Assembly (NCBI GenBank): GCA_009103225.1
Contig: RHPI01002090.1
Location: forward strand, 644,414 to 708,413
Length of the DNA stretch: 64,000 nt
Source of the DNA: Chlorokybus atmophyticus
Taxonomy: Eukaryota; Plantae; Mesostigma and Chlorokybus algae
Reading direction: 5' to 3'
In this document: positions 6,939-55,400 of the stretch, piece by piece
Layout: each line of letters begins with the position of its first letter
How positions within the stretch are numbered: position 1 is the stretch's first letter
Position numbers and translations under genes: made by a program
Notes under the pieces: model-generated
What the model saw: the letters and a program-made list of their open reading frames with translations, nothing else
Database searches by the model: none
What the model was told of the DNA's origin: nothing

Positions 6939-7666
6939 TGATTGTTTCTGCCCTTTCAGACAGCACGGTTGACTTGTTGGTAGCCTGAGCTGGGTTGAAT
7001 GTTTCCGCGTCGCTCCCAGTGTGCAGTTGCAGCACTGGCCTAAGAGTTCTTTGGGCTGCGCATGACTGACGCGCATACCCGTTCTGTGGTGCTGTGTGCA
7101 TGATGTCCAGATAATTATGTACAGTGGTACACTGGTGTATAACATCACATTACAGGCATAACAAGCCAAGTGTTGTGTACGCATATGTTGAGGATCACAT
7201 GCGCATGCCCGTCTTGCATTCTATGTACACTGCTATCTACAACTGTACACGGGTATGGTACATGGTGCATGTTTGCGAGACGATGCGGAGGGCAAGCTGT
7301 TTGGTACGTCAGGTGCAGTACACGCGCACCACTTGCACAGAATCTGACAAAATCGTCGACGATTGCACCTTGTTTGTCTACTGCATGCGCTTGTATACAT
7401 ACAGTGAGCGGCATGGGGTGTTGAGTTCGTTTTGGGCAGGCGATTGTAACAATACCCAAAGTCTGTAAGGCCACAACTGACAAGCCCAACTTGATTGTCA
7501 GTGTCACCCTGAATGTCGCATGGCACGCCATGAAGAGCGCGCGCCGAATGCAGCACCCCCGTCGCGAAGCCTACTTGAGCTTGCTAGCGACAGACTGACT
7601 TGTGAATTGCGGGTGAGCGTTCTGCCGCTGGCGGCGGCGGGCGGGCCGGGTGGCGGGCAGAGGGTT

Positions 7667-12598
<4,932 letters not shown>

Positions 12599-23420: not shown

Positions 23421-24309
23421 GCATGCAACATGCACAGCATACAACATACACACGCAATGGTTGAGCTTGTCTTGCGCAGTACCGCTAGAGAACTGACTTG
23501 AGAGTAGCCTTTACCGATAGGACGCTGGCTGCCTCGGCTCCAAGCCGTAACTTGGGTCTTACCAGAAAGACCAGCCCGGACTGTGCCAGTTCTAACTGCC
23601 TGCAGCCTATACAGTACTGCGTGTAGAGTAGCTTATCGTCAGTAGATATCATATTTGTGCGAATACAACCCCCCCTTACAAACAAAGCTTCCCCCTATAT
23701 TTTAGGGGGGGTGTTGAATTAAGGGGGGGGGGGGGGGGGGGNNNNNNNNNNNNNNNNNNNNNNNNNNNNNNNNNNNNNNNNNNNNNNNNNNNNNNNNNNN
23801 NNNNNNNNNNNNNNNNNNNNNNNNNNNNNNNNNNNNNNNNNNNNNNNNNNNNNNNNNNNNNNNNNNNNNNNNNNNNNNNNNNNNNNNNNNNNNNNNNNNN
23901 NNNNNNNNNNNNNNNNNNNNNNNNNNNNNNNNNNNNNNNNNNNNNNNNNNNNNNNNNNNNNNNNNNNNNNNNNNNNNNNNNNNNNNNNNNNNNNNNNNNN
24001 NNNNNNNNNNNNNNNNNNNNNNNNNNNNNNNNNNNNNNNNNNNNNNNNNNNNNNNNNNNNNNNNNNNNNNNNNNNNNNNNNNNNNNNNNNNNNNNNNNNN
24101 NNNNNNNNNNNNNNNNNNNNNNNNNNNNNNNNNNNNNNNNNNNNNNNNNNNNNNNNNNNNNNNNAATCATGCAAGGGGGGGGGGGGGTGTAATAGGGGGG
24201 GGTTGTATTCAACGAAATATGGTAAGCTACTCATAGTCCTCATAGACAAGCTAACTACATATAAATCATAAAAGCCATAAACCATACATACCATAATCAA
24301 TTTTCAACA
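23421..24309 (-). repeat. 3' LTR of the Copia element (contains MITE and assembly gap; outer ~17 bp lost at n 23420)
   Basis: Aligns by eye with 30638-30945. Minus-strand PPT gggag is followed by TGTTG at 24309. Confidence 0.8.
23649..24222. mobile_element. TA-flanked Tc1/mariner-pogo (Tc2-like) non-autonomous element inserted in the 3' LTR
   Basis: TA|tcatatttgtgcgaatacaaccccccc ... gggggggttgtattcaacgaaatatgg|TA form imperfect inverted ends. Removing it gives agtagaTAagctactc, matching actagaTAagctactc in the other LTR. The interior is mostly N. Confidence 0.8.
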
Positions 24310-32335: not shown

Positions 32336-33584
32336 TTAGTTGAGGCCATATCCTAGAATGAAGAGGAAAAAGAAGAACACCAGGCTGCCCCAGATCAAGA
32401 GGTTCTTCTGCCCTGAAGTGAGGCTGTTTCCTCCCAACCCATACTTCTGGTTTTCTGCGAACCCAGCAAGCACAACCTGCAAAACATATAATCAAGCGTC
32501 TGTGCTGTTTCCTTTTTACACTCCCATGACATGTCACATGACCATCGCCTTCAGTAACTGCATTGCAAACAATACACATACCTCCTTGGAGTTGAAAAAC
32601 TGCTTCTCTGCTCCACAAGTGGGACACTGCCAGTCACCAGGGAGGTCTTTGAACTGCGTCCCTTTAGAAATCGGGTATGACGAATCACCTTGGGTGGGGT
32701 CATACTCGTACTGCGCACGGACGTGTCAACGACCACAACACTGTGTGGCATAATGAAGGCCAACAGCATTGCACTAGCGCGCATCTCAATACAGGCTATG
32801 GCGTCTTCAATGACTTTGACTGGAACTTACCCCACAACTCCTGCAGGCAAACTTGCCGCTCTCCCGGGTAGCGAGTGTTTCATTACGGGCCCTGGCGACA
32901 ACAACAAGGGTGCATGTCAGCGCCAATGGCTGAAATCTGAGGTACAAGGAGGCCAACCAAGAAGCAACACAAACATGCAAATGACAATGATGCTGATTGA
33001 AGAAAGCAGCTCGTAAACAAAGCAAGGTACATAGGGAAGAATGGTGTACAGGGAGAGGACACAGTCAGTCAGCGAGACTGCGAAATGGTTGTCAATGCGA
33101 GCATGTTTAATTGAGCGCATTGACGACCAAAATACATGCAGACGCCTTTAGCTGTGCACAACGTGTCTGCAGTACACGCGAGTGGTGCAGCTACGGGAGA
33201 TTCACAGGCAATACACTCAAGTCGTGCAGCTACGGGAAACAATGACAGGCAATGCACTCTGCAGCACAAGACATATGCAACTCACTTCTCCTCAATCTCC
33301 TTGCGGCGATCCAGGCGCGCCTTCTCCCTGCTTACAGCCTCGCTCTTCCCCACGGCAAAGTCCACATCGAGCGAGGAGGCGGCCCCACGGTCACCGCCGC
33401 TGCTGCTATCGCCCCCATCGGCGGCCGCCCTCACCACCGCCGGCCGAGAGCGACAGCGCAGTGCCGCTGCACCAGAGGAGGCGATCCGCCGCCTGGACGG
33501 CAGCCGCAGCACGGCCGATGATCCTCCCGGCTGCAGCAAGCACACCGAACCGCTCAGCGCCGTCGACGCCATCGCCGCCGGCAT
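32336..33584 (-). CDS. RBD1: Thylakoid rubredoxin (RBD1/RubA-like, PSII assembly), 4 exons
   Basis: A transit-peptide-like N-terminus, then KFACRSCG|YEYDPTQGDSSYPISKGTQFKDLPGDWQCPTCGAEKQFFNSKE|VVLAGFAENQKYGLGGNSLTSGQKNLLIWGSLVFFFFLFILGYGLN*. Two CxxCG motifs plus a C-terminal TM helix. Start is 33584 or 33572. Confidence 0.92.
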
Positions 33585-33704
33585 CCCCGAAGACGTCGCC
33601 GCTAACGCCACCGTCACAGGATAAACACGCATATACTCGCTGCCCAACTGTTGCGCCACGTCACCTGCTGAGAGGGGGCACACGCTGTGCGCTCTTGTGC
33701 GTTT

Positions 33705-33712
33705 TAGGGTTT
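33705..33712 (-). promoter_or_regulatory. Telo-box AAACCCTA between divergent RBD1 and RPB5
   Basis: tagggttt at 33705-33712, with a second ttagggtt at ~33723. Confidence 0.55.
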
Positions 33713-33772
33713 CTTGTGCCAATTAGGGTTGGGTTGGTGGTGGATGTGGTTGTGCATGTGGGCGGCGGCGGC

Positions 33773-34387
33773 ATGATGGACGAGAGGGCGACGCGGTTGT
33801 ACCGCGTGAGGAGAACGGTGTGGCAGATGCTGGCAGACAGGGGGTATCTGGTGTCGCCGGCGGAGCTGGAGCTGACGCGGGAGGTGTTCAGGGAGAGGTA
33901 CGGGGAGGAGCCCAAGCGGGATGAGCTCACCATCCTGGTGCCCCGCAAGGAGGACCCCTCTATGCAAGTCTTCGTGTTCTTCCCCGAAGACACCAAGGTG
34001 GGCGTGAAGACCATCAAGACCTATGCCGAGCGCATGAAGGCCGAGGGCGTTGGCCACGCCATCATGGTTGTCCAGAGCTCCCTCACCGCCTTCGCCAAGC
34101 AGTGCCTCGCTGAGATGGCCCCCAAGTACCGCATTGAGCAGTTCCAAGAGGCGGAACTCTTGGTCAACATCACCAAGCACGTCCTCGTCCCACAGCACAT
34201 CCTCCTCACACCCGAGGAGAAGCGCCAGCTGCTGGAACGCTACCGCGTCAAGGAGACGCAATTGCCACGCATCCAGCTGTCTGACCCCGTCGCTCGCTAC
34301 TACGGCATGACCAGGGGTCAGGTCGTGCGTATCATCCGCTCCTCTGAAACCGCTGGGAGATATGTCACCTATCGCCTTGTTGTATAG
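33773..34387 (+). CDS. RPB5: RNA polymerase subunit RPB5 (RPABC1), intronless
   Basis: MMDERATRLYRVRRTVWQMLADRGY...QVFVFFPEDTKVGVKTIK...EAELLVNITKHVLVPQH...LPRIQLSDPVARYYG...VVRIIRSSETAGRYVTYRLVV. Confidence 0.97.
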   Translation: MMDERATRLYRVRRTVWQMLADRGYLVSPAELELTREVFRERYGEEPKRDELTILVPRKEDPSMQVFVFFPEDTKVGVKTIKTYAERMKAEGVGHAIMVVQSSLTAFAKQCLAEMAPKYRIEQFQEAELLVNITKHVLVPQHILLTPEEKRQLLERYRVKETQLPRIQLSDPVARYYGMTRGQVVRIIRSSETAGRYVTYRLVV

Positions 34388-38280: not shown

Positions 38281-41200
38281 CTACACGGTCTCCTCCATCA
38301 CCAATGATAGCCGCTGCAGCACCCCAGTCTGTTCTTGCAGATGTTCCTAACAACATAGAATGAGTAACAACGTGGCAGTCGAGTTAGACTATCTCAAGGA
38401 GGCTTTTAAGCAATTGCCTTCCATTACATACACCAACAGGCCATGCATGCTAGAACATACTTGTGCTAGTAGATAGCGCGCACGGGTTTGCTGTTCCAGC
38501 AGATGCCGCCATTGCAGTGCCAGGCCAAATTCAATAGTGTTGTGCTGTGCAAAGTGCGCTGCAATTGAACCAAAATCATGAGGTGTGCCAATTCGAGTGC
38601 CAGTGAACAACTGTGCTGGGAAATGGCCAACGAAATGGAAGCCTTCATTCTTCAATCCATAATCTTCTGGCTTGCCCACTAACACCGGTCTGCAACAGCA
38701 AGTAAACAAATTTACGTACCCAAAGAGAATGAAACCGAATCTTTGGTTGCGACGTCAATGAGAATAGTCAACACTGGATTGGTCGCTCATAGGACATCGC
38801 ACCTGGCACTGGGATCCAACAGCAACAGCTTGCTATTCAACATTGTGTTTGCCTGCTCCGCGGCAGCTGCATTTGCAAATACCACATAACCCTACACAAC
38901 ACTTCAGCAATGAATTTTAATGCAAGAATGTGTCCGTGAAGCCACAACCACACTTGGCAAATAGAGGCAGGCATCTGCTAGCATACTGTAAAAAGCCAAC
39001 AAAGGTGCTCACAACGCACCTGAGCACACGCAAACGCATCATGCCACAAGTCCGGAAGGAGAGCAGCATCTTCGACTCCTGTGCATGCTGCCGCAAAAGC
39101 CTCCCAGAGTTGATTGCTGTCAACGCCTTTGCACAGATTGCTAACCAACAGAACCCGGCTTGCTTGAGCATACTTAGGCAGCAGATGCGGCTGGGTTGCA
39201 ATACGCTTACGTGTCTGTTTGCATATGCGGTGGAACATCAGCTTCTGGTCTGTTGCATAGCGTCTTTACACGACAGTACCACTCACCGGCAGGGGCAACA
39301 GCTTGGACGCTTCTAGTGGCAACGAGATGTTGCCACTTGTGTCTTGGTGGTTTGTGGTTTGCTTGACTGCGCAAAACGCACAGATAAGCAAGCACAGACA
39401 AAAGGGTCACTGCAACCATGCACAATCCATCGCGCAGACAACAGCGCCCACAACAGTGGCTCTGAACCGACCTGAGACTTCATCGAGCTTGCTTGACACC
39501 CCTGGTTTCGATGACAGAACGGTGCCAGTGCTTTGACTCGTCTCCATGCCTGCTGTTCAAGAGCATGGCAGAAAACAGATGTTGCTCACAGGGCTTGTTG
39601 TGCTGAATGTGTCTAGGCACAGTACTGACCTGCAACTGATGGGACAGCCAGTGTCTCATTGGCGGCTTGACCCTCTGGTTTCCTTGAAAGCTTGGGTATC
39701 TTGGGCAGCTCCTTAGAAGGCACACCTACAGCTTTTCTCTTCTCCCCCTTGATCTTTTTCAAGGCCGGTAACCCCTTCAGCAAGCGTGCACTTGGCTTAA
39801 GCAAATGATTGGACGACCTGTGTGGCCTGCTGGGTTCATTTGCGGCTGTCAAAGCAGGTTGCTCAAAGGCTGCACTTGGCGCTTGCGCACTTGTGATCGA
39901 CATGTCCTGCTTGGTGTCGGAGTTGCCAAGGACTAGTGTTCTGACCTTGGCTATTGACGTTGACCGGGCCAACTTGACATCTAGAATGGGAGTTGAAACA
40001 GCTCTAGCAACTTGATTGTTTGACATAGTGACAGCACTTCCAGGAACACTAACAGAGGGACCTGATGAGGGTTCCGTTTTGGGGGCAAAACTCATATCTT
40101 TCACAACAGAAATTGATTGAGACGGAACCACAGCAGCTGATTTGAGACCAGAAGTTGTACGGGCCAGAGGCTCAGGCGACCCTGTGTTGGCAGCCAAAGG
40201 CTTAGCGGTGTCTTTAATAGTGACACTTGCTGGCTTGGTGCTTGCATGCGCATCTGCGTCCTGTTGACTGCTTTTGGAAACTGCAGTCTTGTTTCCACCT
40301 GCCACTCCATCTTCTGGAAGTCCCGGCTTTGGAGATTGGGTGTCCTTCATTCCTGAAGAGAGCTAATGATGCCTTGTGCATTGACACCAAGAAGTGGGTG
40401 CAGCCAACGAGTGCCTTGGCTGCGACAGCTGGCTGGTGCGGGTGCTCTGTCAACGCTAAGATCACATTGCCTTGCAGCTTACCTGTAAGACAAGACACAA
40501 TCTGACCTTAACGCCTGTGACTTTATGGTACCAATAAAAAGCTGCCCGCATCCTAGCTTGGGGAGATACTACTTAAGCTGAAGTTGTCGTATTTTGCCAC
40601 CCCAAAAGCACCAGCATGCAGTTAATAGGCGTATAGTCAATGCCAACTCACCTGACGCGGTTTGATGAACCTTGGCTTCCACTTGCGCACCACTCCCACA
40701 CTTCTTTTGCACCAGCTGAAGGAGATGCGGAGGGTTCACAACATGATCTGCTTGAGTGTTAGTAAAGTACACACAGTACGAGACGAGTTTGTTCAGGTGA
40801 CTGCAGGACTAACCTTTGTGGTCCCTGTACAAGCCATGAAGGCTCACCATCTGCTTGCGCTGCAACCATCACGTACATCGGCGTCAAGATGGTTGCCTGT
40901 TGCCAAGACTCACCAATGTAACACATGGTGCCCTTAAATCACATGTGCTTTGAGCAGTCCCTTCACCGTCCCGCCGACACATTCACCCCCCCTCACGTGC
41001 GCATGCACACACACGCCCNNNNNNNNNNNNNNNNNNNNNNNNNNNNNNNNNNNNNNNNNNNNNNNNNNNNNNNNNNNNNNNNNNNNNNNNNNNNNNNNNN
41101 NNNNNNNNNNNNNNNNNNNNNNNNNNNNNNNNNNNNNNNNNNNNNNNNNNNNNNNNNNNNNNNNNNNNNNNNNNNNNNNNNNNNNNNNNNNNNNNNNNNN

Positions 41201-42487
41201 NNNNNNNNNNNNNNNNNNNNNNNNNNNNNNNNNNNNCCTCCCTGGGGACAGTGTGACACTGAGTGCTACGGCAAGCATTGTCAACATGCTGGCTCTGTAT
41301 GTCATTTTCGATGCAGTCCTGCACTTTCCTCCGTTCACACAGTATGTGCACCAATTGGCCGGACGACTTGTGACTTAAGAACCAAGGTGTGAACGTACTG
41401 GACATTATACCATGCACAGCTGTGAACTCAGTACAGACTTACTTTGTCGTGCCATGCACATCGGAAAAAGTAGTCTACATAGTCGGTCATTTGCTTTCCA
41501 GGAGGCACAACTGGTATGTTGTCATGGCTCAGGTGCTCCCAAGTGCAAGCAACCAGAACCCTTTTGATAATAACCTCCATGGAGTTTACATCAACCTCTG
41601 CCTTATCATCGGCTGCAAGGAATATCTGCAAGACAACGTGACGACAATGTGACAACAATGACAGTCCAAGCGACTAAGGTGGGCCCACTTCAAGCACCCG
41701 CAACGCCTACTCCAAGCACTGTGCAAAACGAAGGAGACAGTTCATACACCACTGCAATGCTCATTGCTCGACTCTTTGCATGAGGGGATACCCATGCCGT
41801 CACTGGATACATGTTCACACGCAGGCTGACACGCATGCACCTCTTTTGCATGAGGTTTCCTGTCTGGGTGTGAAGAAAAGTACTGCTTGTCAATATCAGT
41901 TGGTCGGAAAAACCAGCGGCCCGTCATCATGCGCTGACCCTTATCGGTGCCTTTCAGCTCCTGCGGCAAGCATACCGTCTACATGCTGAAAGCAGAAGGC
42001 AGGAACTAGCCAGCCAACGAGTGCCATGCGCACGCGTTGAGGTGCACTTGATGCTAGTCACTGCGTTCCCTACACGGATTTACCAACGACGTACCTCCCA
42101 CATGCTCGTAATGCGCCAAACAAACGGTAACTTGCTGTCCGAAACCAGGTGCACACAGTCGAAAACTTTGATTTTCTGCTTGTTGCGAGAGCAAACAGTT
42201 CGTCAACTCATCAACCACAACGCGATGAGCGACAAGCAGAGCTGAATAGCCGCATGTGTTTAGACGCTGCATGCACGTCCTCTATGCAATTGACAGCTTA
42301 CCTGCTTGGGCCGTCCAGGCTTTGACCTAAGGCAAGCATGGTAGTACTGCCGATCGTCCGTCCTGTGCGCCTTCTTCCCCCAGATGATCTTGACAGCGTC
42401 CTCGCCGTCTGGCTCATCGTGGTCGTCCTCGTCATCCTCCTGCTGTGCGCTCCCTGTCCGCGATGTGGTCTTCCTGGCTTGCGCCAT
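38281..42487 (-). CDS. ASI1: ASI1/IBM2/SG1-like BAH + RRM protein, multi-exon (gap at 41018-41236)
   Basis: BAH: IIWGKK...RQYYHA, VFDCVHLVSDSKLPFVWRITSMWE, GRWFFRPTDI, KEIFLAA, DYFFRC. RRM: VLLVSNL...GYVVFANAAAAEQA...RPVLV. C-terminal AHFAQHNTIEFGLALQW resembles plant ASI1 SHCSQPNTIEYDMAMEW (recalled). Middle exons are only partly resolved. Confidence 0.8.
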
Positions 42488-47945: not shown

Positions 47946-50032
47946 TCAGAAAGCTTTCGAAACAGGCACGCAGCAGTTGCAATCTGCAGCCAGCGTACCG
48001 AGCATAATGAGCTGGCCAGATCGCAGAGACACGGCAAGGCGGGGCCCCAGGAAATGAAGCGCAGCAGCTTCATCTCTGCCAGCACCGAGACCAAGCTGGA
48101 ATAGAGGCCGCCACATCCGCGCTTCGAACACCGTTACAGCTCCACCTGAGGTTGCTGCCACCTTGTAGCCGTCCGCATGAAGCGCTGTGACCTGAACCAT
48201 CCAACAACAAATCGACCGTCACCTCTACGCAAAACAAACACACGTGACCGCCTTATGGTAAGCTTCGTCACCTCGTCAAGGCCACAAGAACCAAACCACA
48301 GTCTTAAGTGTAAAGTACCTGCGCAGAGGTTCCTCCACTGCCTATGCGCCCTGTCCCGCACTTGAGCAGCGCTACGCGCACCTGTGAGTGCAAGTTGCTG
48401 AGCGTCTCGGATTAAGCATTAAGCAGCAGCAAGTCACAGACCACACATGGTAGCCCACATGAGTACCTGTGAGTTGGCATCCCATGCGAATGCCGCGTTG
48501 GGGTGGCCGTTGCCCGAATTGTTGTGCTTGTACGCAGCCAACACGACACCCAAGTCCTCAGCCTACATGCAACGAGTCAGTATCAGTCGCACTGTTGCGT
48601 GTGTATGTCAGTTGACTCGACTCACCTCCGCAACCTGCGCCAGAGGGCAATCGCAACTGCCAATGAAGTGCCGAATCTCCATATCAGCGTTGACATCGTA
48701 CATCTTTATCAGACCTCCACCAGTGCCGGCGGCCACGCATTGGCCACCTCGCGCACTGCATGCACACACAACGCCTCCGCGCCCAACCCACCAACTGCAC
48801 GACATGCAGTCTTGAGCCAATGCATACAAACACTAACACCCATCACCCAACTTACCACGAGACAACTCACCCGCCAGCGATGATGGCACCAGTGGCGGGA
48901 CACGCGACGGATAAGAAACCGTCACGCGTGCCAGCGGCAACCAGCGGAGGCCGGTCATGGCCGCGCGTGAGCATCGCCATCGCCTCAACGTGGCCGAGCG
49001 CGTTGCACCACGCCAAGTGCTTGCCGTCAGCCACGAGGGAGAACGCGCTCACGACACCCGTGCTCGTGCCGTAGGCCACGTACGCTCCATCTGCAATACG
49101 TGTCAGTCGTGTGAGTTTGTGACTGCGTGCATGCAAGGGTGAGTGTCCTTTCCACCTTCTGAGATGGCACCAGCTGTCGCGCAGATGTCGTTGAGGTGAA
49201 ATGCAGTCCAGCGGTGGCGACTGGTAGCGGCGTCTGCAATGTGACACCCGTTGCGCGCTGTCACGATAACCGCTCTGCGCCCACCATCTGTCAACCTCAT
49301 CGCAAGGGGTTTACCTGTGTGCGCACCACACAGTCAACCTTCCGTGACAGCTACAAATACAGAACACAGCAGTTACCAAAGAGGGAATTGGTAACACCTG
49401 CAATGCAACATCCCAACCTAGCAAGTGGTTTGTGGAGTCACTGAGCTGCGTGGTACAGTTGTTGATACTGTTGCTGTTGTGTGAGCAGCAGAGCCAAGCA
49501 CGGCCAGTCCGCCACGCCTTCGCTGCAGCGTATCTCGAAGGCGGGGGCAAAGCGTCGCTACCACTACTCATCTCGGCAGCAGAGACCATTCTGCAGGCCG
49601 CCAGGTGCCTCCCCCACAGCTTGTCCTGCCCGACCACCACATCTAGCCACTCCCTGTACGTGCGTGACCTTATCTTTTGTTGTGTTGCCTTGCATGATGC
49701 GAATGCTGTCGCAACACTACAGAGGCATGCACGCTTGGCAGTCATCCTGAACAGCAAGCACTCAACCAACTGCTGTCTGCCTGCTCCGCTGTAGCTGTCA
49801 TACCAGGCCGTGGCACAACTGCCTTCACACGCAGCAGTCACCCACTAACCCTGCTTCTACTACTCGCAGCAACAGCATGCATCTGCAAGACCGTCAGCAT
49901 CAACAAGAGCACCATGCTCCGAGCATGCCTGCAGACACATGCGGCTCTGGCGAGGTCCTCCGGGGGGAGGAAGCTGCCCAGGACGCCTTCCAGCATGTCG
50001 CGCCCCAGGCAGTCCACCGTCGCCTGCCCCAT
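47946..50032 (-). CDS. F-box / WD40-repeat protein, multi-exon
   Basis: F-box LGRDMLEGVLGSFLPPEDLARAACVCR|EWLDVVVGQDKLW, followed by propeller-type strands (YVAYGTSTGVVSAF, LVAAGTRDGFLSV, CVAAGTGGGLIKMYDV, VTALHADGYKVAATSGGAVTVFEAR). Confidence 0.75.
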
Positions 50033-50114
50033 GCCTCTCCCTGTGTGTCCCGCCGCCGTCTCCTCCTGTACCGGCAGAGCCAAAGTGACCCATCCCATTA
50101 CTTACGCGCACCTG

Positions 50115-50122
50115 CCACGTGG
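50115..50122. promoter_or_regulatory. Palindromic G-box CCACGTGG between divergent F-box and LptB-like genes
   Basis: Directly visible in the ~200-bp intergenic region. A TGGGCT site-II-like motif lies at ~50163. Confidence 0.4.
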
Positions 50123-50233
50123 ACGGACTGTACAGGATGGGACTGCATTCGGGAGTAAAGACTGGGCTCAGGACTGTGCTCCAAGGACCGCCTTGTGGTT
50201 GTTTGGCGATGTTTGGGACTTGTTGTGGTCGCC

Positions 50234-51703
50234 ATGGCGCTAGCGGCGGCGGCGGTGCCGTCTGTCTCGTCCTCCTCGTGGGCGCTGGAGGCGTCGTCTT
50301 CGGCGCCTGCCAATGAGAAGCACGGTGAGAGACCGTCGTGGCGAGTGGCGGTGGCGGCTGGGGAGGCTGTGGGGCTTCTGGGGCCCAATGGCGCGGGCAA
50401 GTCCACCCTCTTCAAGGTGAGGTAAGCCGGTTGAGTGGTGAAAGTAATGTTGATGCATGTCACGCATGGCACATTATATATATATAAGACGAGTGAAGCT
50501 GACTACCTCATGTGTATGAATCAACTCCTGAGCTAACTGATTCAGAGTTTGTGATTAATGGTAGTGACAAGCAACTCCTGCCTGAATTAGCTCAGGTGTT
50601 GCTGGATAATGCCAGTCAGGTGCTTCCTGACTGAAGCTTACAGGAAGATCGCTATATGAGTACAGCCCAAATGATGCTTCAGGAAGCAACTCTGACAATT
50701 CATCACGCTGCGCAGTCAAAAAGACACCCCTTTGCCGCACTTCCTTCTCCCTGGCTAAGCCGCTTTGTGATCGTGAGTCATGTTGTCTTGCAGGCGTTGG
50801 CAGGGGTGAGCCGCAGGATAGCGGTGGGCTCCGTGCTGGTTGGCGGAGTGGACGTGAGCAGCTTACCGCCTCATCTGCGAGCAAGAAAGGGCCTCCTGTA
50901 CCTGCCCCAAGACTCGTCTATCTTCCGCAACCTTTCGGTCGCGGTTAGCATGATGTCTCTCCCTTTCACAATTTATTGCAAGGAGGTTCTAGAGCACAGC
51001 CAACTGTCGGGGGGGGCTAGGTTGCTTGCTGATGCGAAAGGCTCGCGGCTTCTCTCTTGCAAGCTTCTGACCATTTTGTCCTGTGTCGTAGGACAATCTT
51101 AGACTTGTGCTGGAGCAGAGAGGAGGGCAGAGTGACGTGCAAAGGGAGGAACGCATTGCACAGCTTCTCAGGGAGTTTGACCTAACACACGTTGCACGAA
51201 CCAAGGCGATCAACCTGTCGGGTGGAGAGCGGAGGCGCACGGTACGCAGATAAGCAGATATCAGCATCTGCAGCACTGTGTGCACAATGTACATATTGTG
51301 ACTGTGATCAGGAACTTGCAAGGGCGCTGGCCGCAGGCGGTGTGGGTGTCGAGAGCGACATGCAAGTATCAGCGCGCGTGCTGCTTGTTGACGAACCGTT
51401 TGCTGGGGTAGGTTTACCTTTTTGCGCTTTCCTTTGATCTTAGACACAATTGCTTGCTTTGTTGGACAGGTGGACCCAATCGGCGTCGGAGAAATGCAGA
51501 GCATGCTTAGGAGGCTGTGCGAGGTGTACAATCTCGGGATTCTCATTACTGACCATTCTGTTGCAAGTACACTGGCGCTGTGTGATCGCGCATACTTGCT
51601 GCACAAAGGAGAGATTATGGCAGAAGGCACACCTGATGAGCTGTTGCAGAACGACTATGCCAGAACACACTACCTAGGCCCATCCTTCGTGGGAGCATCT
51701 TGA
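50234..51703 (+). CDS. lptB: LptB-like (LPS export system) ABC ATPase, 5 exons, Ala/Ser-rich N-terminal extension
   Basis: GLLGPNGAGKSTLFK|...YLPQDSSIFRNLSVA|DNL...NLSGGERRR..ELARALA...LLVDEPFAG|VDPIGV...GILITDH...CDRAYLLHKGEIMAEGTPDELL...YLGPSF. DEPFAGVDP and the YLG tail are LptB hallmarks. Confidence 0.82.
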
Positions 51704-51913: not shown

Positions 51914-54838
51914 CTAGTACACGCGCTCAACCGTTGACACTGGTGTCAAGAACACTACAATGATGGTAATGTTGTCCTCAGAGTCCCTCAAGCCAGCTTC
52001 TGCCGCAAGGCGCTTGCCAGCAAGATGCGGGTCTTTCACTGTGTCCTTCACATAGTTGACGGCTTCTTCATTGCTGACCACATCCCATAGGCCGTCACTG
52101 GCGAGAATTAAGAACTGCACAAGTAGGATGTTGGTAGGTTTTACTGAAAACTTGTGTTGCGCGGCAAAACGCACTGGGTCAACACAGGCTGACACTGTGC
52201 CACGTGCAAGCGTCCTACCTCATCTTGTGGGGTGAGCTTGTGCGTGGTCACTTCCGGCTCAGCTGTCACTGCTGGTTTCAAATCGTCATCCCCAATAGAG
52301 CGCGAAACCTAGCATCAGCAACGTGTAAGCTCTTCCACAACACAAAACTTCTTGTGTCCGTGTACATTGCTGCGTGTAATGGCAGAATTCCTATACCTGC
52401 AGAGCAGCTGCACCAACACGCCAAGTGTCTACTCTCCACTCAACAGTGCTCCCAGCTGAGACGACTCGTGCCTGCAAGCATGCGTTCATTACAAGGTGCA
52501 TAGACGCGGAGGTCATATGCAATGGGTGCTTTAGTGCATGACCACGTACCCGCTCCTGCTCATCTGCAACAGTATGGTCTCTAGTGAGCTGAACCGCCTT
52601 TCCGGCACGACTGACAACAGCTCGGCAATCACCGGCGTTTGCCAGTACAAGCTGGTCCTCCCACAGCAAGCCTGCAAGGGCTGTGCAGCCTGGGTGCCAT
52701 CTTTGGCCATTCTTCATCTGTGTTCGCCTGATTGCTGCTTCCGCGCAGAACGCAGCGTCCAGCTCCACAAATGCTCGGCTAAGCACTTCCTCAGGCCTGG
52801 TGAAGTTCAACAGGGTCACAACCTGGACACCACGTACACCGTAACAGGGTACCTCCATAGACTTAACTTTTACCTATAATTGCAAAGCAGAGCTGGTAGC
52901 CGTGCAGGCAAGGCATGTGAAGCATACTCTGCTGCTTCAAAACCTCTGTGACCATCAAAGATACCAAGCAAGGTGAGGCCACTGACGCCACCGATGCCGC
53001 GTGCGAGACAGTGCCTGTCCTCCATTTTTTCTCTTGCTCCACTTGAAGCAAATACACCCACCGCAATGACAGGCCTGTGTGCAACCTCGAGTTACAACAC
53101 AACCGCACCTAGCATATGCGCACGAGCATCACAATGTAGTCTGGACAGTATGTTAGGAGTAACAAATTGTCGACGGTCGAAGCATATACCTGTACAAAAT
53201 CACATCCTTGTTGCTCCACTGAGGCTTCTCCCCAATTGGACCAGCCTGCGCGTGCGACACAGCTCGGTCGGCCCATGAGGCTGCCTCTTCGTCCTGCTGT
53301 GGCGTGGCAGCGACATCATCCTCATGACGTTCTGATGTCAACTCTTCAGGCAAAGTGCGCAAGATGTCCTGCATTGCTTTGACAACGGCAGCTGCGGAGG
53401 GGCGAGCAGCAGGGTCTTGCTGCCAGCAAGCAGTTAGCAAGTCCTTAAACTGCTGGGGTACGTGTGGGTCGGTTGGTGGACGCAGACCGTGAGAGGCAAT
53501 GGCCTCCGCTAACGCCTGCTCAGTGTAGTCCATCTCCAGTACGGTGTGTATCTGCACTTGCGTGGTGAGGTCGGTGAACGGCAAGACCTGAGTGCATGTT
53601 TCATTTGCGGTGATGGCCCACGAGTACACATCCGAAGCAGGAGAGTGGGGATGCTTCTTGAGCACTTCTGGTGCAAGGTAGCGCATCGTGCCGACCATGT
53701 GGTCCTTCTGGAATCCACCAGTGGGTTTACCTCGGCCAACCCATACTCGAGCACCGGTCTCGGTGTAGCCGCCGGCTGCAAGTGTTGCAGACTCTTCTGC
53801 CAGCCCAAAGTCCGTTATAACAGCTGCGCCATCAGCGGACAACAGAACATTGGCCGGCTTCACATCGCGATGGACAACGCCCTGCAGTGCAACATCAGAC
53901 TTGTTCTAGCCCATTCAAAGGCGAGCCGCAGCCAGAAAGACTGTATGAAGTTATGACAAGCAGCACCAGTTTCAACGAGGCATACGTACACATTATTTCT
54001 GACCGCACAATGCAGGCACTTGCTCAGTGTGCTCAACACGACTGCTCCATGACTGCTATCATCATGAACGCTACTGGCAACTGTGGTGTTCCGAACATTA
54101 GCCATCTGCTAGAGTAAAGTGTGTCGTGGGTGCATTCAATGTACATTGATCTTGGATTTACATGACACTTAACACGTTGTATGTTCCAAGGACGCTCACA
54201 TTGAGTTGTGGGCATAATTGCAGAAACATAAATGCAGTGAGAACGCATTCGCAGGTCAACACTGCTAGCCTGCTGTTGTGAATCATGTTCGGCACCTTTT
54301 CGTGCAGGTAACAAAGACCTCGAGCAAGATCGGCAGCAAGGTGCAGAGCTCGAACAAACGACATGCGATGGGCTCCCGGTGCATGAAGGCGCGCATGCAA
54401 CGAGCCCCTTGGATGGAGCGGGAGCGCCAGGGCGTAGTCTGGGGGGTGAGCGCGGGCGGCAACCAAGGGGGCAATGTGAGGCGGTGACGGCCCTAGCAGC
54501 TCCAGCAGCCTGATCTCTTTGTGGAAGCGGGTCATGTCGTCAGCCGTGCGTAGAAATGGGCGCTTAATGGCGACGGGCTGGCCATCCCACGCGCCAGACC
54601 AGACCACACTCTCGGCCCCTCGGGCGAGCTCTCGGATAGCGCCGACGCCGATCTGCTGCTCGCTGGCCTGCTGGAAGGCGCCCTTGGGGACGTCCAACCG
54701 CACTCGCTCGCTGCGGCAGCAGCCCCTGACGCAAATGCTGATCTGCTGCTGGTCCCGCTTGTCCGGCGTCTCCTGCTTGCTGACGGCGGCGGGCGCAGGC
54801 GTTGAGGCCGGCGTAACAGCCTCCAGCGACGGTGCCAT
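51914..54838 (-). CDS. Protein kinase-PP2C phosphatase fusion, multi-exon
   Basis: Kinase: [50 protein letters not shown]2C: [53 protein letters not shown]. Confidence 0.93.
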
Positions 54839-55400
54839 GGCGGACGCCCTTGATGCCGCCGGCCTCGACCAGTGTACACCACTCGCCGCTACCACGAACA
54901 CCACGCTCAGCGCCTGCTCGCTCGGTCGCGGCGTGCCAGCGTGTCACGCACCAGGTTGGTCGGGCTGATCGAAATTGAAATGCTCACCCCGTTCATTGCA
55001 TTGCCATGCAATCATCATTGACACGCTGGCAGCGACGGACCCGTTGGGGTATTTTTTTCTTTTTTTTTCGTTCATTTGATGCTCACAGCAAGTAAGGGTA
55101 GGTCCATGCGTTGATTATTAGGCAGGCAGGCACTCAAGCAAGGTGTATGTTATTTTCCGTTTCTGGCCATTTGTGTCATACATCTGGGAACGAGTAGTAT
55201 TTGCCACTACGTTATGACCTTCCATGGTTGAATGATGGATTCTTAATGTTATGTTACACTAGCTGCGGAGGACTACGTGATGACGATTGTCCTCTTTTGC
55301 AAGTATAATATGCTTTGTTGTGAGCATCAGTATCATGTGTGCACATGTTCAACGTATTTGGTATTTTGCAGCTATGCTGGTTTGCAACATGTGCTCAAGC

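Follow-up and report, generated by a model that had tools for sequence, protein, structure and literature searches.

A diverged nuclear gene for a putative LptB orthologue of cyanobacterial type in the streptophyte alga Chlorokybus atmophyticus

LptB is the soluble ABC ATPase of LptB2FG, the complex that extracts lipopolysaccharide. A representative of known structure is that of Escherichia coli (LptB2FG(C); PDB 4P33, 6MBN, 6MHU and others), and the group closest to the gene described here is that of cyanobacteria, in which lptB has an LptA/C-like gene on one side and an LptF/G gene on the other. At two such cyanobacterial loci (L003, positions 7458-9972, and L001, positions 7395-11138), a gene for a 170-aa LptA/LptC-like protein lies upstream of lptB and a single LptF/G-family permease gene lies downstream, which makes for a compact lpt cluster unlike the E. 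coli arrangement.

Plants retain genes for lipid A biosynthesis. They also keep LptD-like proteins in the outer envelope of the plastid, namely TGD4 and LPTD1. To our knowledge, the sole characterised ABC motor for lipids in the envelope is the Mla-type TGD1-3 system. Its ATPase subunit TGD3 (ABCI13) resembles the protein described below in being a nuclear-encoded, bacterial-type soluble ABC ATPase, and it powers the Mla-like TGD1-2-3 plastid lipid importer, which moves lipids between the envelope membranes in concert with an outer-envelope protein of LptD-like type. TGD3 belongs, however, to a different ABC family, the MlaF type, and MlaF scores for the Chlorokybus protein lie far under those for LptB. 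An inventory of the ABC proteins of Mesostigma recognises 14 ABCI groups, names none of LptB type and never mentions lipopolysaccharide, and no paper discussing a eukaryotic LptB was found in our search of the literature.

The window, by which we mean the whole 64-kb stretch of DNA analysed here, is a nuclear scaffold of an early-diverging streptophyte alga, and the model of its LptB-like gene is already public. The gene has five exons, lies on the forward strand at positions 50234-51703 and codes for a stand-alone ABC ATPase of 270 amino acids. Exon 1 (50234-50416; 61 aa) carries a 16-residue, uncharged, A/S-rich leader, then a first strand and an A-loop region that are both degenerate (Asn27, His30), and the Walker A motif GPNGAGKS. 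Exon 2 (50794-50943; 50 aa) contains the Q-loop LPQDSSIFRNLSV with Phe105 and Arg106, the equivalents of E. coli F90 and R91, and exon 3 (51092-51241; 50 aa) the helical subdomain and the ABC signature LSGGERRR. In exon 4 (51312-51407; 32 aa), an insert specific to the lineage, GGVGVESDMQVSA, precedes the Walker B motif LLVDEPFAG, to which the catalytic Glu189 belongs. Exon 5 (51470-51703; 77 aa, coding to 51700, followed by TGA) provides the D-loop VDP, the H-switch ITDH and a C-terminal tail of LptB type ending in YLGPSF.

The four GT-AG introns announced in the original prediction were all confirmed, and each of them is in phase 0: intron 1 (50417-50793, 377 nt, GC 0.46), intron 2 (50944-51091, 148 nt), intron 3 (51242-51311, 70 nt, at RRRT|ELAR) and intron 4 (51408-51469, 62 nt, at PFAG|VDP). 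The exons have a GC content of 0.60 (GC3 0.66), against 0.40-0.51 for the introns. A search with exon 5 as query in a library of 1.84 billion proteins returned a protein of 270 residues (P0001), which exact look-up identified as Chrsp26S04193 of the EukProt/JGI Chlorokybus atmophyticus set, and the exon translations tile this protein consecutively (residues 1-61, 62-111, 112-161, 162-193 and 194-270). The Chlorokybus gene is thus already in the databases as an identical JGI model.

The nuclear location that had been claimed for the gene is borne out by its spliceosomal introns and by its eukaryotic flanks, with an F-box gene on one side and PP2C and kinase sequences downstream. The first exon of the F-box gene (49838-50098, reverse strand; Pfam F-box, 1.5e-4) stands head-to-head with the LptB-like gene, and 135 bp separate its start codon from the LptB-like ATG in a divergent arrangement; the two genes (49838-50234) probably have a bidirectional promoter in common. 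On the other side, kinase exons (54904-53153) followed by PP2C exons (52858-51914), both on the reverse strand and perhaps parts of one kinase-PP2C fusion gene, form a unit (51914-54904) that is placed tail-to-tail with the LptB-like gene and ends about 210 bp from its stop codon. Other eukaryotic genes within the 64-kb window code for Rpb5, CDC5/Cef1, a DEAD-box helicase and an exonuclease. The Rpb5 gene (33182-34387, forward strand) appears as a single long ORF with the Rpb5 domains at residues 201-400; its first ~200 codons are rich in Pro, Ser and Arg and are probably non-coding. The window also contains a near-perfect GA/TC dinucleotide microsatellite of about 1.15 kb (10170-11320), whose translations in several frames are (RE)n and (LS)n; the 10-12 kb bin that holds it has a GC skew of -0.49 and an AT skew of -0.59, with one ambiguous base at the edge of the microsatellite. 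Runs of N, representing assembly gaps, occur at about 23760-24170 and 41020-41230 and appear as runs of X in ORF translations, the first of them being flanked by proline-rich/C-rich sequence.

Several comparisons place the predicted protein in the LptB family. P0001 aligns over its full length with NCBIfam TIGR04406 (LptB) at 242.2 bits, marginally over the curated equivalog cutoff of 240 bits, with UrtE (122 bits) and LivG (106 bits) as the runner-up families; two of the orthologues score higher on the same model (300 bits for P0005 of Spirogloea, 272 bits for P0006). When exons were searched singly, exons 2, 3 and 5 each ranked TIGR04406 first (7e-10, 2e-10 and 1e-20), the second-best family for exon 5 being at 2e-8. 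In sequence matches to the PDB, exons 2 and 3 hit LptB chains only and the top 15 matches of exon 5 were all LptB; in E. coli numbering these exons end contiguously, exon 2 reaching residue 95, exon 3 covering 97-145 and exon 5 168-239 of 241. An AlphaFold2 model computed from an alignment of 39 sequences has a mean pLDDT of 87.7, and the 23 best PDB matches of this predicted fold are all LptB, with TM-scores up to 0.91 (target-normalised). The assignment to LptB rather than to LivF/LivG or a generic ABCI protein, as originally proposed, is therefore supported by HMM scores as well as by sequence and fold matches in the PDB. LivF/LivG, UrtE and MlaF identities were rejected, their scores being less than half that of LptB; the tree described below comprises LptB sequences only, so that it is the HMM scores that set the protein apart from LivF/G and UrtE. 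The protein has at the same time the features of the plant ABCI class: a single nucleotide-binding domain of bacterial type in a protein of 270 aa, no transmembrane domain, and a nuclear, intron-containing gene.

The motifs point in the same direction. GPNGAGKS starts at residue 50, PQDSSIFR at 99, LSGGERRR at 153, DEPFAGVDP at 188 (across intron 4), ITDH at 219 and YLG at 261. Across 39 aligned LptB sequences 54 columns are invariant, including Lys56, Gln100, Phe105, SGGERRR, DEPFAG and His222, and the whole catalytic set of the Chlorokybus protein (K56, Q100, LSGGERRR 153-160, D188/E189, VDP 194-196 and H222) falls in such columns. Phe105 is found in 39 of the 39 sequences and Arg106 in a column at least 90% conserved; both align to E. 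coli F90 and R91, in agreement with what had been claimed for this pair. The C-terminal extension of LptB type is kept as well, with Y261, L262 and G263 invariant. By score, fold, motifs and phylogeny, we thus regard the predicted protein as an LptB orthologue. Its likeness to E. coli LptB extends to 45% identity, a TM-score of 0.87-0.91 (target-normalised) for the model, and conservation of the F90/R91 groove pair, the catalytic Glu and the H-switch; it differs from the E. coli protein by an Asn in place of Tyr13, a His in place of an invariant Arg and an 11-residue insert before Walker B.

Orthologues were sought with P0001 as query, with a profile of its relatives and by database look-ups, and the best 120 matches were listed. 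They were found in Mesostigma, Klebsormidium, the four zygnematophytes Mesotaenium, Spirogloea, Netrium and Closterium, species of Sphagnum, Ceratodon and the lycophyte Diphasiastrum; beyond streptophytes, the match lists are almost entirely cyanobacterial. Two of the orthologues already bear automatic LptB annotations: Klebsormidium nitens GAQ88722.1 is named 'lipopolysaccharide export system ATP-binding protein' and a Sphagnum jensenii UniRef entry is named LptB. No sequence from seed plants, ferns, chlorophytes or red algae occurs among the best 120 matches, and the lack of an orthologue from seed plants, ferns and chlorophytes in this set suggests that much of the green lineage can do without the function. 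The Sphagnum orthologue is uninterrupted on an assembled contig of 1508 bp (L082, Logan SRR12193049), which is probably a transcript and would point indirectly to expression of the gene in the moss. Two public models look wrong: Spirogloea muscicola P0005 (580 aa) has a D123/CDC123 domain (PF07065) fused to LptB, and in Closterium P0009 (340 aa) introns have been read through.

With slightly more belief than doubt, we favour the reading that the gene is a nuclear LptB orthologue of cyanobacterial type, that its family still acts as an LptB-type motor and that the Chlorokybus copy has diverged. The divergence is most visible at the N-terminus. The original prediction held all catalytic and diagnostic motifs to be intact; every motif that it listed is indeed present, but the aromatic residue of the A-loop, an invariant Arg and a conserved Lys are replaced. 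In an ungapped alignment of the N-terminal residues, Asn27 occupies the column of E. coli Tyr13, where the adenine-stacking aromatic is Tyr or Phe, His30 takes the place of an Arg that all 38 other LptB sequences of the alignment share, and Pro25 that of a conserved Lys (K-x-Y-G-x-R region). Detectable LptB homology, by HMM as by tblastn, begins at residue 38 (window position 50345), and in the AlphaFold2 model residues 1-12 are predicted to be disordered, followed by a predicted strand at 16-22 with a pLDDT of about 70; the insert of exon 4 is modelled at about 69. Of the 87 columns with a conservation of at least 90% among the other sequences, 14 are altered in the Chlorokybus protein and 0-10 in its relatives, and the altered columns of Chlorokybus include N223 and E226 beside the H-switch in addition to the A-loop Tyr and the invariant Arg.

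Branch lengths were taken from a maximum-likelihood tree of 53 sequences (IQ-TREE, LG+C20). The Chlorokybus terminal branch measures 2.36 against a median of 0.25, and leaving out the N-terminus and the insert reduces it to 1.27, the median then being 0.20; it is the longest of the nine streptophyte sequences, even on core columns, at about six times the median. Chlorokybus shares with the other streptophyte sequences its clade, the extended indel, common intron positions and the state of a stand-alone nuclear ABC ATPase, whereas its relatives retain the canonical N-terminal strand, the A-loop Tyr or Phe and the Arg, several of them have basic leaders of 50-100 residues, and their evolution is several-fold slower. 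Such strong divergence would reflect either relaxed constraint or a changed role, both of which deserve to be taken seriously for Chlorokybus itself. Since the A-loop is degenerate, the insert lengthened and the leader minimal and uncharged, ATP affinity and location may differ from those of the relatives.

These same observations feed the most serious alternative, in which the partner or the substrate has been lost in Chlorokybus, constraint has relaxed and the reading frame, still open, is vestigial and serves no export of LPS type. The length of the branch even on core columns, the 14 altered columns, the reduced leader and the apparent absence of the gene from many green lineages (in the best 120 matches) are all what a decaying relic would leave. 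Against this, five exons with canonical splice sites join into an unbroken reading frame; Walker A, Q-loop, signature, Walker B with its Glu, D-loop, H-switch and the Phe/Arg groove are all kept; the AlphaFold2 model is a confident one; and both the exon GC and the GC3 are well over the intron values. We consider a relic rather unlikely, while giving it more weight than any other competitor of the favoured reading.

The leader bears on where the protein works. It consists of the 16 residues MALAAAAVPSVSSSSW, which are rich in Ala and Ser and in which Arg, Lys, Asp and Glu are all absent, the first basic residue of the protein being K29, already inside the domain. The leaders of the orthologues are of another kind: 59 aa with seven Arg and Lys in Mesostigma, 52 aa with eight in Sphagnum and 104 aa with 11 in Netrium. 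If a transit peptide is taken as an N-terminal extension of at least about 25 residues that is hydroxylated, net basic and poor in acidic residues, these three leaders have that character and the Chlorokybus leader does not; with no basic residue, it is unlike the usual presequences of plastid or mitochondrial proteins. Of the A/S-rich N-terminal extension originally described, the composition stands, but the extension amounts to just 16 uncharged residues, and its description as transit-peptide-like did not hold up, the leader being shorter than those of the orthologues and devoid of their basic residues. On these compositions a transit peptide is plausible for the family and a weak proposal for the Chlorokybus gene, because its short uncharged leader contrasts with basic leaders of 52-104 residues in the relatives. 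A missed upstream exon, which would have carried the canonical strand and a longer transit peptide, was considered and rejected: when nine orthologues were compared by tblastn with the complete window, nothing was found before 50345, no in-frame ATG was found 5' of 50234, and there is no space for extra 5' LptB exons because the divergent F-box gene starts 135 bp away.

A leader that is not plastid-like leaves room for a second alternative, that of an ATPase repurposed to drive another membrane partner, or to work in the mitochondrion or the cytosol, so that no LPS-like lipid is moved. TGD4 and LPTD1 act in glycerolipid import with the Mla-like TGD1-3 system and not with an Lpt motor, and the lipid A enzymes of plants are reportedly mitochondrial (Li et al. 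2011, PNAS), which we count in favour of such a change of use. The contact residue itself speaks for the opposite: Phe105, which in bacteria touches the coupling helices of LptF/G, is the same in every sequence aligned and Arg106 nearly so, and the invariance of this groove argues that a coupling-helix partner persists in the family. The tail specific to LptB is retained too, and the long basic leaders of the relatives fit import into plastids. We hold repurposing to be improbable, and less credible than a relic.

The descent of the gene was followed in the same tree, in which the nine streptophyte sequences form one clade (support 100/99) nested within cyanobacteria (96/90), with a sequence from an uncultured cyanobacterium as sister (95/78). 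The sister group recovered is thus cyanobacterial and not proteobacterial, and when each bacterial species was represented by one genome in a scan, the seven best matches all came from cyanobacteria. Two sequences, from Methylacidiphilales and Deltaproteobacteria MAGs, that fall inside cyanobacteria in the tree were taken as mis-binned cyanobacterial contigs and not as another donor. A nested indel between ARALA and LLDEP agrees with this: bacteria other than cyanobacteria have 9 residues there, cyanobacteria have 12, streptophytes 14-15 and Chlorokybus 20. Intron positions are held in common as well: those at RRRT|ELAR (intron 3) and PFAG|VDP (intron 4) by Chlorokybus and Klebsormidium, and one at YLTQ|E by Klebsormidium and Ceratodon; the position of intron 1 is absent from Klebsormidium and Ceratodon in this comparison. 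A hidden GT..AG mini-intron of 33 nt in exon 4, whose removal would bring the insert to E. coli length, was rejected because an insert at the same site is present in every streptophyte orthologue as well as in all cyanobacteria, and because the other introns measure 62-377 nt.

Bacterial contamination or recent horizontal transfer, for which an identity of 49-54% to many bacterial LptBs and a raw-score rank among cyanobacterial sequences might be invoked, is hardly credible, because the gene has four spliceosomal introns, lies among eukaryotic genes of a nuclear scaffold (64 kb), forms a clade with eight other sequences from streptophytes, has introns at Klebsormidium positions and shows the streptophyte-specific extension of the indel; the original prediction had likewise argued from the introns against bacterial contamination. 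Judging from the phylogeny and these gene features, the gene is an ancient endosymbiotic transfer from the ancestor of plastids, predating the diversification of streptophytes and inherited vertically since, with spliceosomal introns gained on the way. The parent group in the tree, cyanobacterial LptB (Nostoc, Synechocystis sp. PCC 7509, Scytonema), resembles the Chlorokybus protein by about 49-50% identity, by its motifs and C-terminal tail and by the cyanobacteria-specific insert of three residues after ARALA; in contrast to it, the Chlorokybus gene is nuclear, has four introns and lies outside an lptA/C-lptB-lptF/G cluster, and its product has the 16-residue leader, the degenerate A-loop and the 20-residue insert.

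If the family still is an LptB-type motor, as we favour, its mode of action can be outlined by analogy with the bacterial complex. A dimer would clamp ATP by means of Walker A, the signature motif, the Walker B Glu and the H-switch, and the conserved Phe/Arg groove would pass the movement on to a membrane partner of LptF/G type, by way of its coupling helices, at the stromal face of the inner envelope of the plastid. An amphipathic glycolipid would in this way be pushed toward the outer envelope, the site of the LptD relatives TGD4 and LPTD1. No LptF/G, LptA/C or LptD genes occur within the 64-kb window. An organellar Lpt machine, as suggested in the original prediction, may exist in Chlorokybus. 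A broader version of this scheme, which we regard as unlikely, is that a working extractor of LptB2FG type may persist in plastids across streptophyte algae, mosses and lycophytes and, with LptC/A-like bridges and outer-envelope LptD relatives, export a lipid A-like or other glycolipid to the outer envelope. Were it true, it would represent a surviving piece of the outer-membrane biogenesis of cyanobacteria that seed plants have lost, like the peptidoglycan wall of the plastid.

An LptB orthologue of clear cyanobacterial descent persists in lineages ranging from Mesostigma and Chlorokybus to the mosses and one lycophyte, and is unseen in seed plants among the best 120 matches. This distribution suggests that, in green lineages that diverged early, some of the cyanobacterial machinery for LPS export survived endosymbiosis. 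The interest lies in this phyletic pattern and in the idea of a relic Lpt motor in the plastids of early-diverging plants, and not in the degenerate copy of Chlorokybus; as this copy is the least canonical member of the family, the orthologues of Klebsormidium, Mesostigma and mosses are better entry points. The fate of the cyanobacterial outer-membrane machinery in plastids thereby becomes a testable question, and a practical one, mosses being amenable to gene targeting.
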